A stretch of DNA of 63,753 nt, counting the filler, from Octopus bimaculoides (taxonomy: Eukaryota): NCBI RefSeq assembly GCF_001194135.2. It is 6 parts of 6 records of this genome, joined end to end, with 100 filler letters (N's around TTAATTAATTAA, not from the genome) between each part and the next. Parts side by side here need not be neighbours in the genome. Positions count along the whole stretch, not along the records: positions 8,081 to 35,263 come from NC_068986.1; 5 more parts are not named here. One strand, written 5' to 3'. The notes beneath the pieces are model-generated. The model did no database searches. It was given only the letters and a program-made list of their open reading frames with translations, and was not told the DNA's origin. A program made the position numbers and the translations under genes. Positions 26,272 to 33,580 of the stretch are shown here, in pieces. Within the stretch, counting starts at the first letter, position 1. Every line of letters starts with the position of its first letter.

Positions 26272-26332
26272 ATGATAAATTGGAAAATATTTACGTTTCT
26301 GGTGTATTTTTTCTGCTTTCCAGCTTTGCACG
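26272..26332 (+). CDS. Gene B exon 1, signal-peptide-like (MINWKIFTFLVYFFCFPALH)
   Basis: ATG, K then hydrophobic core, donor g|gtatgt in phase 1, compatible with the phase of exon 30280. Confidence 0.65.
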
Positions 26333-27044
26333 GTATGTAATATTAACTTTCATAACTAACTTTAAAAAAGTGATTTTCGTAATTTTCAAAACTATAAACT
26401 TGATTAGAAATAAACACGAGATGTTTGTATGTTCATTGGTTAGAAATGTATGTTAAATATAGTGACTATATTACAACTTAGCATAATATTTATAGTTAAT
26501 AGTCTAGATTTATTTTCAATCGAGAAGGAAACTTAATCTGTGATATCCAGAATATCAAATATGTATGAGAAAATTATGAGAAATATTCTAAAATTACTGT
26601 ACATTACCTTATAAAACAAATATACAACACACGTGAGTGTGTTGTATATTTCCACAACTCACACACGCACGCACGCACACACACACATACAGACACACGA
26701 TGCACGCACACACACACACATCTTTAAATATTTTTCATTAAATATTTTACCTCTTGCCTCCCCTAGGAATAAAAATCTTATGCACCATGTTTCAACAGGC
26801 TCATTGATCAACATTGTATAATTCTTACAAACGATAGTGTTGAATATCATTTTGCTATAAGTTTCTTCTCATTCTGAACTGAGTTATGTAAGCAAATATC
26901 TCTTGCCTTTTTCTTCTGTTCAAAAGTTTTACTTCTCATAAATTACCTTCACTGCAAAAAAAAAAAAATAAAACAATTTCACTTCCGTTAAGTAAGATTT
27001 AAATTAATAATTATTATTGTCGTTATTATTAAGGCACCAAGAAG

Positions 27045-27485
27045 GCGGTGAGCTGGCAGAATCGGTAACACACCCGGTGAAATGCTTAGCGGTATTTCGT
27101 CTGCCGCAACGTTCTGAGTACAAATTCCGCCGAGGTCGACTTTGCCTTTCATNNNNNNNNNNGTGAAATGCTTAGCGGTATTTCGTCTGCCGCAACGTTC
27201 TGAGTTCAAATTCCACCGAGGTCGACTTTGCCTTTCATCCTTTCGGGGTCGATAAATTAAGTACCAGTTACGCACTGGGGTTGATGTAATCGACTTAATC
27301 CCTTTGTCTGTCCTTGTTTGTCCCCTCTATGTTTAGCCCCTTGTGGGCAATAAAGAAATAGGTATTTCGTCTGCCGCAACGTTCTGAGTACAAATTCCGC
27401 CGAGGTCGACTTTGCCTTTCATTCTTTCGGGGTCGATGAAATAAGTACCAGTTACACACTGGAGTCGATGTAATCGACTAGCCCC
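27045..27485 (+). mobile_element. SINE family A tandem units in gene B intron 1
   Basis: Three overlapping family A cores. Confidence 0.8.
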
Positions 27486-27489
27486 CTTA

Positions 27490-30130
27490 CTGGGTGACAG
27501 TACCAGCCTCACTTTCCTTTTCAGGTGGAACCTGAAATAGTCAATGAGGCCTTGACCAAAGATGGTTGGTACCCATCTTCAACCCTTTCAATCGTGTCCG
27601 CCACAAAACCTCTTTTGTCATAGCCACCAGACAGAAAAATTACCCTCCCTTCCCGGTCAAAGGAAGGAGGCGATCTTCACAATGGACTCGGACAATAACT
27701 GGATCCGTCCTACACGTGACAATAACTGTTCTACAGAGATCCACAAGTCAGCAATGTGCGGATACTGTACGAGAGCATGCAGAACGGTTACATTGTTCCG
27801 CGTGCATCTCGGACAAGCCTGACTGACTGTACACCTGTGCCTGTAGAACTTATCTCGAACTGGCAGCGCCCTCCGGTAGCATTGCCAGGCCAGGTATTTC
27901 TGGAAGTTATCCATAGTTCCTGGCCCGAAAGTCCTCCGGAAGAGACCAGCCAGTTGATTCTCCTCGACATCCAGGACCTCTCCGAGTACGTCGTTGCTCT
28001 CGCCCTTCACTAATCCCCTATAGAACTCCAAGGTGAAACTTCCACCGACCGCATTTCCCGAGTGGCCGAGGATTGTGAGCGCTTGGAAACACTGTAGGTG
28101 TCAAGCACACTGCCTCGATCTACGTCTGATCCAAGAAGGTAGCTCCGTCAAGGAGACGAGCTGCGGAAAAAGCGCGTTCAACAAACGACGACTACACCTG
28201 ATCACCGTTAAGGTATCGCTGGAGATGTCGCAGTCTCANNNNNNNNNNNNNNNNNNNNNNNNNNNNNNNNNNNNNNNNNNNNNNNNNNNNNNNNNNNNNN
28301 NNNNNNNNNNNNNNNNNNNNNNNNNNNNNNNNNNNNNNNNNNNNNNNNNNNNNNNNNNNNNNNNNNNNNNNNNNNNNNNNNNNNNNNNNNNNNNNNNNNN
28401 NNNNNNNNNNNNNNNNNNNNNNNNNNNNNNNNNNNNNNNNNNNNNNNNNNNNNNNNNNNNNNNNNNNNNNNNNNNNNNNNNNNNNNNNNNNNNNNNNNNN
28501 NNNNNNNNNNNNNNNNNNNNNNNNNNNNNNNNNNNNNNNTCTGTCACCTCGCCCCAGTTCTTGTCCACTTGGAGATCTGGACTGAACCAGACCCCGAGCA
28601 ACTTAACAGGTCCTTCCGTCCAGCGCCCCACCAAGCTGTCGGTTGGCATGGGCCTGCCTCTCCTGGTGCCGAGCTACAGGCCCACTGACTTCTCCTAGTT
28701 GATCATTGCTCCTGTCACCGCTTCGTATTCCCTTAGGGTAGTGTCGACCATCTCGACTTCCGCGATGTCCGACACTATCACGGTGACGTCGTCCGTATAC
28801 CCTGACATAAACCCTCTGCATCCCAGTTCACGCAGGATGCCCCTCGAAACCTCCAGCTTCCAAAATAATGGCTCGAGTGCCAGTATGTAGAGAAGCGGTC
28901 AGAGTGGGCATCCTTGATGGACCGAACGTGCGATACTAAACGATTCCGAGAGATGGCTATTTACTTTGACCACCGAACAGATGTCGCTGTACATTGGAGC
29001 GATCCAGCCTCTGAAAACAGCCTCCAAATACAGATGGTCGACCCTATCAAAAACTTTCGATTGATACAAATGGGTCAGGGGCCCACCCATGAAAGGTTCT
29101 TTACTAACTCTCTCTATAATGTATCGCGTGAGGTGGAGGTTATCGTATATAGTTCTGCTGGGGATAGCGCAAGTCTACGCATCACCCATCGTAAGTGTCC
29201 CGTTGAACCACAATCGTGGCACCTCGGCCTTCTGCCCGCCATGTTCACCCTTAGTTCTACTCCATTCGATAGGGAAATCAGGTCTGGGACTTTCTCTAAC
29301 TGCTCTGGCTTCACGTGGAGAATAACTTCCAAGGTAGTCCCAACCCAATTCTCCTTCCTCGATTTTTTAACATCCAGGAGATTCTCTCCCCCGTCCGTAC
29401 AAATACAGGCGAGAATCCACCATAAATCCAGGCCCGGTGGGACACCAGGTCCCATAATTCGCACCGTCCTTCTTCCCATGTACGTTGGGAAGAGAACGAT
29501 TTCATCGGTGCGTCACGTGGTCACCGAGCTCTGTCCCTCGATTTTAAAGAGGACCTCTATTCCGCCGTACTGCCTCGCAATGTGGTGGATACCCTGTCTT
29601 TCAAGGCTTTTTCCACCTGGTCACGCTTAGAATTTTCGAGTTTCCTTTTCTTTGTGTTCACACACCTGTAGACAACTGTCCGTTTGGCTGTTGGTTCAAG
29701 CATGTCGCTTGGAGGCGTCAGTTCTACCTTCCTTCCATTCATTTTCATATATTTTGCTGCCTTGTTTAGTTTTTCTATTTTGTTCTCCAATGAGATGTTA
29801 ACTAATTCCTTAGCTGCCGTGTCTCTTTCCCGCCGCTAACTCTATTTTTGTTAGACTCTTCGTAGCAGTTGCTTTCAATGTTATTCTTCGTGCTACTACA
29901 CTTTCTATGTAGGGAGGAAGACTTCACTCCTTCCTTCCTCTCACCTTCTTTCTGCTTTTCATCTTCTTTCTTCTTTTCTTGACTCTCCACTTCATCATCA
30001 TCATCATCATCATCTTCTTCTTCTTCTTCTCATCCTGATGTCTATTGCCAATCATGGTGGGGAGGACAGGGAAGTCCTCATGCAAATTGCTGTACCACCT
30101 TCCTTCCTCACTCCCGCTTTTCGTCGCCAT
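27490..30130 (-). mobile_element. Tx1/L1-like non-LTR retrotransposon, internally deleted
   Basis: ORF1 with CHDCGSTGH knuckle; RT motifs YQSKVFDRVDH, SVHQGCPL, LLGVWFSPDLQVDKNW; C-terminal LAWQCYRRALPVRDK...CPRC...VLHALVQ. Confidence 0.9.
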
Positions 30131-31860: not shown

Positions 31861-31908
31861 TTATTGTTATTGTTGTTGTTCATGTTGTTGTTATTTATTG
31901 TTTTTAAG

Positions 31909-32100
31909 GCTGAAAGACTACAAAACAGATATCAGCAGGATTTAGTGAAAAAAGAAGACATATTACAACATTTTGGACTGGAATTACAAGATTTTGCCAA
32001 TATTGTTTCTACTGCAGATGCCGATGAAATTTTAACTAACCAGACTGTACTTGACATCAACTTGTTAGTACTTCCTGGGGACTTCGATGATAGTTTGAAG
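31909..32100 (+). CDS. Gene B exon 4 (64 codons)
   Basis: ttattgtttttaag|GCT...AAG|gtaagt; AERLQNRYQQDLVKKEDILQHFGLELQDFANIVS...TNQTVLDINLLVLPGDFDDSLK. Confidence 0.9.
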
Positions 32101-33379
32101 GTAAGTATTTGAATAATTCAAACACTAGATTTAAATTATTTATATTAAGGCTAAATCACACGTCCTTGTTTAACTCGTTGCTAGAGTCAAACACTTTCCT
32201 GCACACTTTAGGAACTTAGAAGTAGAAAGCGGAAGCTGTGAGGGAAGAGGTTGGAAAGAGAAGGGAAAAGTATTATAAGGATAGGTAGATTACACGGACG
32301 GACAGTCAGACAGCTAGATAGAGAGATAAATAGAGAGAGTAGATAGAGCAGCAGTGAAAGACAAAGAGAGAAAGAGAGAAAAAAAATTGTCAGCTTATAG
32401 TCGAGCAGATAATGAAGTATAAAGAGGAATAACAGACTTAGAGTGGAATAAATAGCAGGAGTAAATGATAAATGAGGAGTTGGAAAAAAGAAAGATAAAG
32501 CTCTACAATTGAGAGATAATGTAATAGGGAGGTAATTTGATAAAATAACAGAGATATAAAGAGTAAGCGAATGAGTGAGTGAGAGTAAACAAATATAGGG
32601 AGAAGAGAGTAAGAAAGAAATTAGTCTGATAACGAAGTGCCTGATGAAGAAGCGAAGTGAAGGCAGATTTTAAGTGAGGGAAGAAAAGCGGGTTCGTTAT
32701 ATTTAATAAGAGAAAAATTAGTGAGCGAGCAAGTGAGTGAGTGAGTGAGAATAATACAGGAGAGTGTGGGTGTGAGAATGTGAAACTGATTGACTTGGAA
32801 CTGCAGAATGAAAAGGGAGATTATATTCTGAAAAAGTCAATACTCTACCTACAGGAATTGATGAGAAGAATTGGTCGGCAAATAACAGCGCATAACATAG
32901 GGTTTAAAAAACCCTTGAATGAAAAAAGACAGAAAGCTACCTTTGGAGCTCGAACCACGCATCTATTGTAGCCCAGCCTGTGTAGTTTACGTATATGTGC
33001 AGACCGAGTCTGACAGGTATCTTATATTTTGATGGGTTTTCTTTTCCGTCAAAGGGATGATTTTTAATCCTATATATTTTGAGCTATTATTTACTGTTGG
33101 ATTAGCATTCGAGATATATGGTTGTAGAAAACTTATTAGTATATATATATATATAGCATTCAATACATATATACTTACGAAGTCCCTTACGTTTACGTTG
33201 TATACTTTGTGTGAAATGTAACTTTTTGTTTGTTCCTACATTTTCTCAAAACAGTAAATCAAGCATCGAGTTATTTATTGATAAACGAAATATAAAAAAA
33301 AAAAACACAATCATATCCATATTTCAGTTTTTTAATCTATTTTAACAACTGTTCCATTCTTTCTTCCTTTTCTTTTCAG

Positions 33380-33580
33380 GTACACCACCTGGAATTTAAA
33401 ATTTCTAGAGAATCATATCAAGCCCCAGGATTTGAAACGAACCAAAATTTCGTCAATGGTACATTTTACAGCATTGAGTTTGAACCGAATGAAGAGGCAA
33501 TCAATGAACAGAATCCGGAATCGTATCAAGTGGCCGTAGTTAACATGTTAAAACGTATGCCTTCCAAAGATGAACTATAA
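33380..33580 (+). CDS. Gene B terminal exon (66 codons + TAA), ends in KDEL; putative Cyt/volvatoxin-fold protein paralog B, 268 aa
   Basis: ttcttccttttcttttcag|GTA; VHHLEFKISRESYQAPGFETNQNFVNGTFYSIEFEPNEEAINEQNPESYQVAVVNMLKRMPSKDEL*. Confidence 0.9.
   Translation, partial: VHHLEFKISRESYQAPGFETNQNFVNGTFYSIEFEPNEEAINEQNPESYQVAVVNMLKRMPSKDEL

Follow-up and report, generated by a model that had tools for sequence, protein, structure and literature searches.

A signal peptide and a C-terminal KDEL on one member of a loosely Cyt-like octopus protein family suggest retention in the endoplasmic reticulum

The octopus Octopus bimaculoides carries, within a same-strand tandem array of related genes, a copy (here called gene B) whose product is most likely a soluble resident of the lumen of the endoplasmic reticulum (ER), a reading that we hold at a probability of about 0.6. 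The gene was found in a 63,753-nucleotide stretch (the window, whose coordinates are used throughout unless another sequence is named) that joins six parts of assembly GCF_001194135.2. Positions 8081–35263 come from NC_068986.1, and this part lies at about 25.87–25.90 Mb of chromosome CM046606.1. Because gene B combines a signal peptide with a retrieval motif, and the neighboring paralog, gene A, has only the former, the simplest reading is a split in which the product of gene B would be retained and that of gene A exported. Such a split had been proposed in a first-pass annotation of this DNA: The signals on which it was built are present as described, and ER residence is what we infer from them. 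Gene B is also the youngest-looking and most divergent copy in the array, and its sequence suggests that it was most likely neofunctionalized, taking up a new role in the ER lumen.

Results

A signal peptide and a KDEL tail in one gene

Gene B is spliced from five exons, across introns that all have GT-AG sites, into an open 807-nt coding sequence (CDS) for 268 amino acids, and the interval 26272–33580 runs exactly from its start codon through its stop codon. The product, which begins MINWKIFTFLVYFFCFPALH and ends PSKDEL before a TAA stop, matches NCBI XP_014790452.1 (‘uncharacterized protein LOC106883826’) at 100% identity; this model and that of gene A are NCBI predictions. Four sequons are present, at N60 (NSS), N121 (NRT), N182 (NQT) and N228 (NGT), and these, together with the start and the PSKDEL end, were all correctly read by the first-pass annotation, as judged on the spliced five-exon CDS.

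The N-terminus has the makeup of a putative signal peptide: An n-region with K5 precedes the hydrophobic stretch IFTFLVYFFCF (a core of 11–14 residues), after which comes P17, and the 10-residue hydropathy maximum, by a heuristic criterion, is 2.42, against 2.2–3.6 in the signal-peptide-bearing paralogs. Residues 1–26 are modeled by AlphaFold at a low predicted local distance difference test score (pLDDT) and lie outside the fold; beyond the N-terminus, 19-residue hydropathy peaks at 1.15, with no window of transmembrane level. The signal exons of gene B and of the paralog LOC106883830 are 61 nt long and that of gene A is 73 nt, and all three end (C/T)AC G|gt in phase 1. At the protein level these exons are colinear, MINWKIFTFLVYFFCFPALH in gene B corresponding to MQFTGIFCLFGAFVCLPTIY in LOC106883830, with a C-x-P motif in common.

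In gene A and LOC106883830, the signal exon is followed by a 45-nt mini-exon (L005 11313–11357 and L006 12655–12699), in which a probable A|S cleavage site is encoded and after which comes a conserved D(A/V)EPQ motif that other octopod members also possess; this region may be a propeptide or a processing site. Gene B has neither the mini-exon nor D(A/V)EPQ, and no copy of the mini-exon was detected in its intron 1.

At the other end of the protein, the KDEL sits on a tail beyond the last predicted helix (H248–261), residues 262–268 being unstructured in the AlphaFold2 model. The C-terminus overshoots the usual end of the family by about five residues, and this extension is the KDEL itself. The PROSITE-type pattern [KRHQSA]-[DENQ]-E-L is present at the extreme C-terminus of gene B and of its Octopus sinensis ortholog. 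Given the composition of gene B, the chance of an exact C-terminal KDEL is about 2e-5, and that of any [KRHQSA][DENQ]EL end is about 4.5e-4. Of the 167 family proteins that were fetched, gene B alone has a retrieval-type end, with about 0.08 expected by chance; the O. sinensis ortholog, also KDEL-ended, joined this set after the scan. A soluble protein that enters the ER and exposes a C-terminal KDEL is retrieved from the cis-Golgi by the KDEL receptor, and a canonical KDEL on an exposed tail is normally sufficient for this retrieval.

Conservation among octopuses

The ortholog in O. sinensis (LOC115213445, XP_029638281.1) also has 268 residues, falls in the 90%-identity cluster of gene B, and is encoded by five exons of identical length with intact splice sites. 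Its first 22 residues are identical to those of gene B, and the end MPSKDEL is kept, so that a signal peptide and a KDEL co-occur in one annotated gene in two octopus genomes. The persistence of the KDEL in the ortholog speaks for the reading, if weakly, the two species being close (94% nucleotide identity). Exon 1 is identical at 58 of 61 nucleotides and at 20 of 20 amino acids, and exon 2 at 98.4% of nucleotides. The D codon of the KDEL differs synonymously (GAT>GAC in O. sinensis), the two residues before MPSKDEL are changed, and N121 is replaced by D.

The ratio of nonsynonymous to synonymous divergence (dN/dS) between O. bimaculoides and O. sinensis is 0.36 (p = 0.003; 268 codons). For a third octopus, the available data (Logan SRR11869391) cover exons 2 and 4, such that the KDEL is compared in two species; over these 126 codons, dN/dS against O. 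bimaculoides is 0.30 (p = 0.002). Neither comparison contains indels or stops. Exon 2 of the third octopus has intact splice sites and an N60 sequon that reads NST, and its exon 4, which has no indel, retains NQT and LLVLP.

The amino-acid changes relative to O. sinensis are unevenly placed, with one in residues 1–87 and 25 in the remaining 181 (88–268). Either exons 1 and 2 are under much tighter constraint than exons 3 to 5, or exons 3 to 5 are evolving adaptively.

A degenerate member of a patchily distributed family

Word-indexed searches for homologs returned almost nothing, and the family surfaced only when gene B, gene A and a third paralog were combined into a profile for a full HMMER scan of 1.84 billion proteins, which yielded 287 cluster representatives (50% identity, E≤1e-3). 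Named members come from octopods (O. bimaculoides, O. sinensis, O. vulgaris and Argonauta hians), fungi (the Agaricomycete genera Leucocoprinus, Trametes and Mycena, and also Ceratocystis), the fern Ceratopteris and the green alga Acetabularia. Among the octopod members, the full-length ones that were sampled bear signal peptides, and most other members of the family do not. Horizontal transfer, possibly via large DNA viruses, could account for so patchy a spread; a scan of IMG/VR for relatives with a smaller alignment found none. No Pfam family covers the domain in the 29 members scanned (gene B, gene A and 27 relatives), a sequence search of the PDB returned no match to either of the two genes or to the family profile, and neither the gene nor the family was found in the literature searched by locus names.

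By descent, gene B is a member of this family, albeit a degenerate one. A hidden Markov model (HMM) of 91 members, built with gene B left out, matches residues 28–257 of gene B at 82.5 bits (E 1.6e-21, Z=1e6), and in a tree of 92 members gene B falls inside a 14-member octopod clade, beside gene A. Its terminal branch is the longest of the 92, and it retains only 13 of the 35 columns with conservation of 70% or more, fewer than any other member (gene A retains 29); among the 11 positions conserved at 85% or more, the initiator Met excluded, eight are lost. The core motifs of the family are LAxSYGxL, W-F...D-D, DIGVLRYPD and YRIKL, and gene B keeps only the first, as LAVSYGKL. The near-invariant D79, W145, D153, R192 and P199 are replaced, as is the YR of YRIKL, and a helix pair has suffered an 11-residue deletion. 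Since substitutions of gene B are also present in the third octopus, these changes are old.

A loosely Cyt-like predicted fold

An AlphaFold2 model of gene B built on a 92-sequence alignment reached a pLDDT of 84.7 and a predicted template-modeling score (pTM) of 0.80; one built on an alignment of three sequences (pLDDT 32) was unusable and was discarded. When the former was compared with the PDB using Foldseek, the top nine matches were all Cyt-fold proteins (Evf, Cyt1Aa, Cyt2Aa, Cyt2Ba and volvatoxin A2; entries include 2w3y, 6t1a, 3ron, 1cby, 6t14, 6t1c, 2rci and 1pp0), with E from 1e-5 to 4e-3, probabilities of 0.89–1.0 and 205–245 aligned columns; the next matches stood at about 0.1. The superpositions are distant, with template-modeling (TM) scores of only 0.24–0.40 and root-mean-square deviations of 9–11 Å. 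Pfam PF01338 matched no member scanned, and hhalign against the Bacillus thuringiensis proteins Cyt1Aa, Cyt2Ba and Cyt1Ca gave a probability of 0.2%. The assignment to Cyt toxins made in the first-pass annotation thus keeps a loose structural footing in the nine Foldseek matches and loses its footing in sequence: The modeled fold may be called Cyt-like, loosely, and the family is not in the Cyt family by any sequence criterion.

Two viral proteins in the BFVD database, M1I283 (E 2e-15, TM 0.67) and M1HBT0, match the gene B model far better than do the PDB entries.

Gene B resembles the Cyt delta-endotoxins of B. thuringiensis, volvatoxin A2 of Volvariella volvacea and Evf of Erwinia in size, in being modeled as one alpha/beta domain with three long strands toward the C-terminus, and in belonging to a group with a patchy distribution that includes mushrooms. 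Unlike these toxins, the octopod proteins are made in a eukaryotic secretory pathway, and cytolytic activity is known for no member of the family of gene B in the literature searched by locus names. A literature search on Cyt-like proteins in mollusks likewise turned up nothing relevant.

Gene A and the tandem array

Gene A is LOC106883829 (P0004), a protein of 309 amino acids whose six exons were placed by tblastn of the annotated protein on a longer chromosome stretch (L005); exons 1 to 3, including that of the signal peptide, lie to the left of position 8081, beyond the piece represented in the window. The protein begins MTSIMQFAAIFALLGAIMYLPGFHASA, a predicted signal peptide, and ends ALDSLL without an ER-retrieval motif, in line with the first-pass annotation, which had it lacking KDEL and probably exported. 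An earlier 245-aa model of gene A (with a MIGTT start and an ‘exon’ at 11722–11856) was overturned by the annotated P0004, which has no such exon, and the idea of a cytosolic gene A was dropped, since the annotated six-exon protein has a signal peptide.

The array runs, on a single strand, LOC106883830, a 115-aa gene model, gene A and gene B. Genes A and B are 23% identical across their C-terminal 116 residues (E 2e-9), and three of their introns occupy aligned positions, all in phase 0. Another model from the old annotation, P0003 (LOC106883823; 212 aa), has an N-terminal portion of about 75 residues that resembles a reverse-transcriptase fragment, and its remainder is a paralog 52% identical to the C-terminus of gene A; this model is probably chimeric and wrong. 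Coordinates of the exons are collected in Table 1.

Table 1. Positions of the exons of genes A and B, and of the first intron of gene B, in the window
Feature	Position	Strand	Description
Gene A exon 4 of 6	10202–10402	+	TMIGTT...QQNV; placed from the P0004 sequence and tblastn on L005
Gene A exon 5	13508–13726	+	AIKVDSWF...PYFK; holds the family motif DVGILRYPD
Gene A exon 6	16997–17182	+	Ends ALDSLL, then TAA (stop 17180–17182); no ER-retrieval motif
Gene B exon 1	26272–26332	+	61 nt, ends in phase 1; Met start and putative signal peptide MINWKIFTFLVYFFCFPALH; from GT donor and translation
Gene B intron 1	26333–30279	+	Both assembly gaps, SINE-like copies near gap 1, decayed non-LTR retrotransposon
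Gene B exon 2	30280–30467	+	188 nt; predicted folded domain begins; N60 (NSS) 30396–30404; AG/GT sites
Gene B exon 3	31089–31253	+	165 nt; N121 (NRT) 31200–31208
Gene B exon 4	31909–32100	+	192 nt; N182 (NQT) 32038–32046; LLVLPGD, degenerate form of the family GVLRYPD motif
Gene B exon 5	33380–33580	+	201 nt; N228 (NGT) 33455–33463; KDEL codons 33566–33577; stop 33578–33580

Gaps and repeats in the first intron

Both runs of N within the gene (27153–27162, gap 1; 28239–28539, gap 2) are confined to intron 1, so no part of the gene B reading frame spans a gap. The orthologous O. sinensis locus, which is free of gaps (L008; 29.8 kb, 0 N), is colinear with the window on either side of both runs and has a counterpart of about 228 nt to gap 2; moreover, a 1.1-kb contig from the third octopus (Logan SRR11869391) connects the 5′ part of intron 1 (26682–26984) to exon 2. 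From these two lines of evidence it follows that exon 1 and exons 2 to 5 of gene B belong to one locus, in the right order and orientation.

Gap 2 is spanned by a decayed non-long-terminal-repeat (non-LTR) retrotransposon on the minus strand (about 27660–29174), which is present also in O. sinensis; minus-strand translations of the intron match RVT_1 (E 2e-6) and zf-RVT (E 1.5e-4). Gap 1 is flanked by copies of a repeat resembling a short interspersed nuclear element (SINE; 27042–27450). This repeat, of about 110–200 nt (...GAAATGCTTAGCGGTATTTCGTCTGCCG...GGTCGACTTTGCCTTTCAT...), has similar copies near 25480–25780, 31320–31400 and 31660–31800. At gap 1, the single copy of O. sinensis is joined in O. 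bimaculoides by further tandem copies, so the gap reflects either a true duplication or an artefact of assembly.

Long microsatellites occur in introns and intergenic DNA (13226–13357, 30480–30552, 8081–8200 and 23245–23300), including (CA/GT)n in gene A intron 4 and (AAT)n immediately after gene B exon 2, and several abut other gaps (12160–12290, 23300–23470 and 24885–25455). Between genes A and B, minus-strand open reading frames at 19440–19790 and 21459–22485 contain GRPSTS-type helix-turn-helix segments; their identity as mariner/Tc1 transposase remnants was not confirmed, Pfam returning only a weak HTH_24 match (E 0.006).

Discussion

Several observations weigh against residence of the gene B product in the ER lumen, or at least reduce the force of the evidence for it. 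Lacking the mini-exon of its paralogs, gene B has no cleavage site obeying the -3/-1 rule (PALHDTGMS, read by eye). The four sequons, regarded in the first-pass annotation as a notable part of the architecture, are no more than chance would supply (a mean of 1.7 in composition shuffles; P(≥4)=0.076); N121 is lost in O. sinensis, and the signal-peptide-bearing clade is no richer in sequons than the rest of the family. Conservation of the retrieval motif is easily overvalued, since residues 88–268 differ at 14% between the two species and four residues would be left unchanged by chance with P=0.55. A dN of 0.047 is not far below the intron divergence of 5–8%, i.e., constraint is modest. The gene models of A and B are both NCBI predictions, and the O. 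bimaculoides protein may have served as a guide for that of O. sinensis; the AlphaFold2 model, for its part, draws on the family alignment and could conceal structural change in gene B. Finally, KDEL retrieval is saturable, and a highly expressed protein could still be secreted.

Some of these same observations would be accounted for if the KDEL were idle, with gene B either secreted like its paralogs (through leaky retrieval, or as the bearer of an accidental recent extension) or a weakly constrained copy drifting toward loss. Its branch is the longest in the family and its complement of conserved residues the smallest, dN amounts to about 0.6 of intron divergence, and conservation of the motif between two such close species is expected by chance about half of the time. 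We nevertheless consider this explanation unlikely: An exact KDEL would arise by chance at only about 2e-5, dN/dS lies significantly under 1 in both comparisons, indels are absent across three species, the D codon has changed synonymously with the motif retained, and a canonical motif on an exposed tail is ordinarily enough for retrieval. Less credible still is an error in the gene model that placed the signal-peptide and KDEL exons on separate mRNAs, as would happen if transcription began in intron 1 and a cytosolic protein were made from Met24, a usable start four residues into exon 2. That intron is 3.9 kb long and repeat-rich, with two assembly gaps, and T-rich DNA easily encodes hydrophobic peptides. 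What makes such an error very unlikely is that the signal exons of two paralogs are homologs of exon 1, by length and phase as well as by sequence, that the gap-free O. sinensis locus has five exons matching those of gene B in length, with intact splice sites, that all signal-peptide-bearing octopod relatives have this architecture, and that the last exon has an intron position in common with gene A.

Two further explanations grant gene B the activity of a toxin. An active, membrane-damaging protein might be parked in the ER or in ER-derived bodies, to be released by clipping of the tail or by rupture of the cell, as the first-pass annotation had suggested. The logic of such storage is familiar from the KDEL-tailed cysteine endopeptidases of plant ricinosomes and from MANF/CDNF, which are held in the ER by KDEL-type tails and released upon cell death or ER stress; their folds are unrelated to that of gene B, and they have retained their active sites, in contrast to gene B, where most of the residues conserved in the family are gone. 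The nearest folds to the predicted one are Cyt, Evf and volvatoxin, the KDEL stands on a flexible and cleavable tail, and the paralogs resemble secreted defense or venom proteins. However, a stockpiled toxin should keep its active core, and the loss of 22 of the 35 family-conserved residues, along with the 11-residue deletion in the helix pair, makes gene B a poor fit to this idea; there is no dibasic or other processing site ahead of the KDEL (KRMPSKDEL), and activity is known for no family member. Hence storage of a pro-toxin is, in our estimation, rather improbable. Alternatively, the motif might act not in the octopus but in its victim. Cholera toxin enters cells by a retrograde route via the KDEL receptor of the target cell, and a secreted gene B product could, by analogy, do likewise, its toxin-like fold and retrieval motif being the ingredients required. 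The yeast killer toxin K28, which resembles gene B as a toxin-type protein that a eukaryote makes in its secretory pathway and that bears an ER-retrieval motif, uses HDEL in this manner, but its motif is masked by a terminal Arg (HDELR) until a late Kex1 step, and only thus does it leave the producer (PMC13211469). The KDEL of gene B stands unmasked right before the stop in both species and should act in the producing cell, whose own receptor would catch the protein; with the toxin core residues lost as well, action in a victim is barely credible.

Retention of gene B in the ER lumen, the reading that we prefer, can be placed in an evolutionary sequence. After duplication, gene B would have kept the ancestral signal-peptide exon, lost the 45-nt mini-exon present in its paralogs, and gained a C-terminal extension of about five residues ending in KDEL. 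Its product would be translocated into the ER and fold as a soluble domain of about 240 residues; molecules escaping to the cis-Golgi would be caught by the KDEL receptor through the exposed tail and returned, and gene A and the other paralogs, unlike gene B, would be exported. Loss of the conserved core under continuing purifying selection argues for a new role rather than a stockpiled toxin, and that role might perhaps be lipid binding, client binding, or the handling of secreted paralogs.

The classical residents of the ER lumen, such as BiP, PDI and calreticulin (PROSITE ER_TARGET), provide the obvious standard of comparison. Gene B is like them in its signal sequence, its exact C-terminal KDEL on a flexible tail, and the absence of any other hydrophobic span. 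It is unlike them in fold and ancestry, which are unrelated, and in having come from a recently duplicated, secreted, toxin-like gene, and its own residence is a predicted one. KDEL retrieval and Cyt-like eukaryotic proteins are already known kinds; what would be new is that a recently duplicated secretory protein with a toxin-type fold has been re-addressed by a short tail, within a family that has not been described.

A more elaborate scenario, to which we attach little weight, is that octopods harbor an expanding family of secreted proteins folded like the Cyt pore formers, patchily shared with mushrooms, a fern, a green alga and two viral proteins, in which one duplicate was disarmed and re-addressed to the ER by its KDEL. 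It might there serve as an escort or immunity factor that keeps its membrane-attacking siblings harmless during their biosynthesis, i.e., as a eukaryotic counterpart of toxin-helper proteins.

If the localization is true, gene B offers a compact natural case of subcellular relocalization after tandem duplication, in which a tail of five residues turns a secreted toxin-like protein into an ER resident whose core motifs then diverge fast. The family itself lacks a Pfam model, is modeled with a loosely Cyt-like fold, and occurs patchily among animals, fungi, plants and viruses; it is a candidate for a new class of eukaryotic membrane-active defense or venom proteins in cephalopods.

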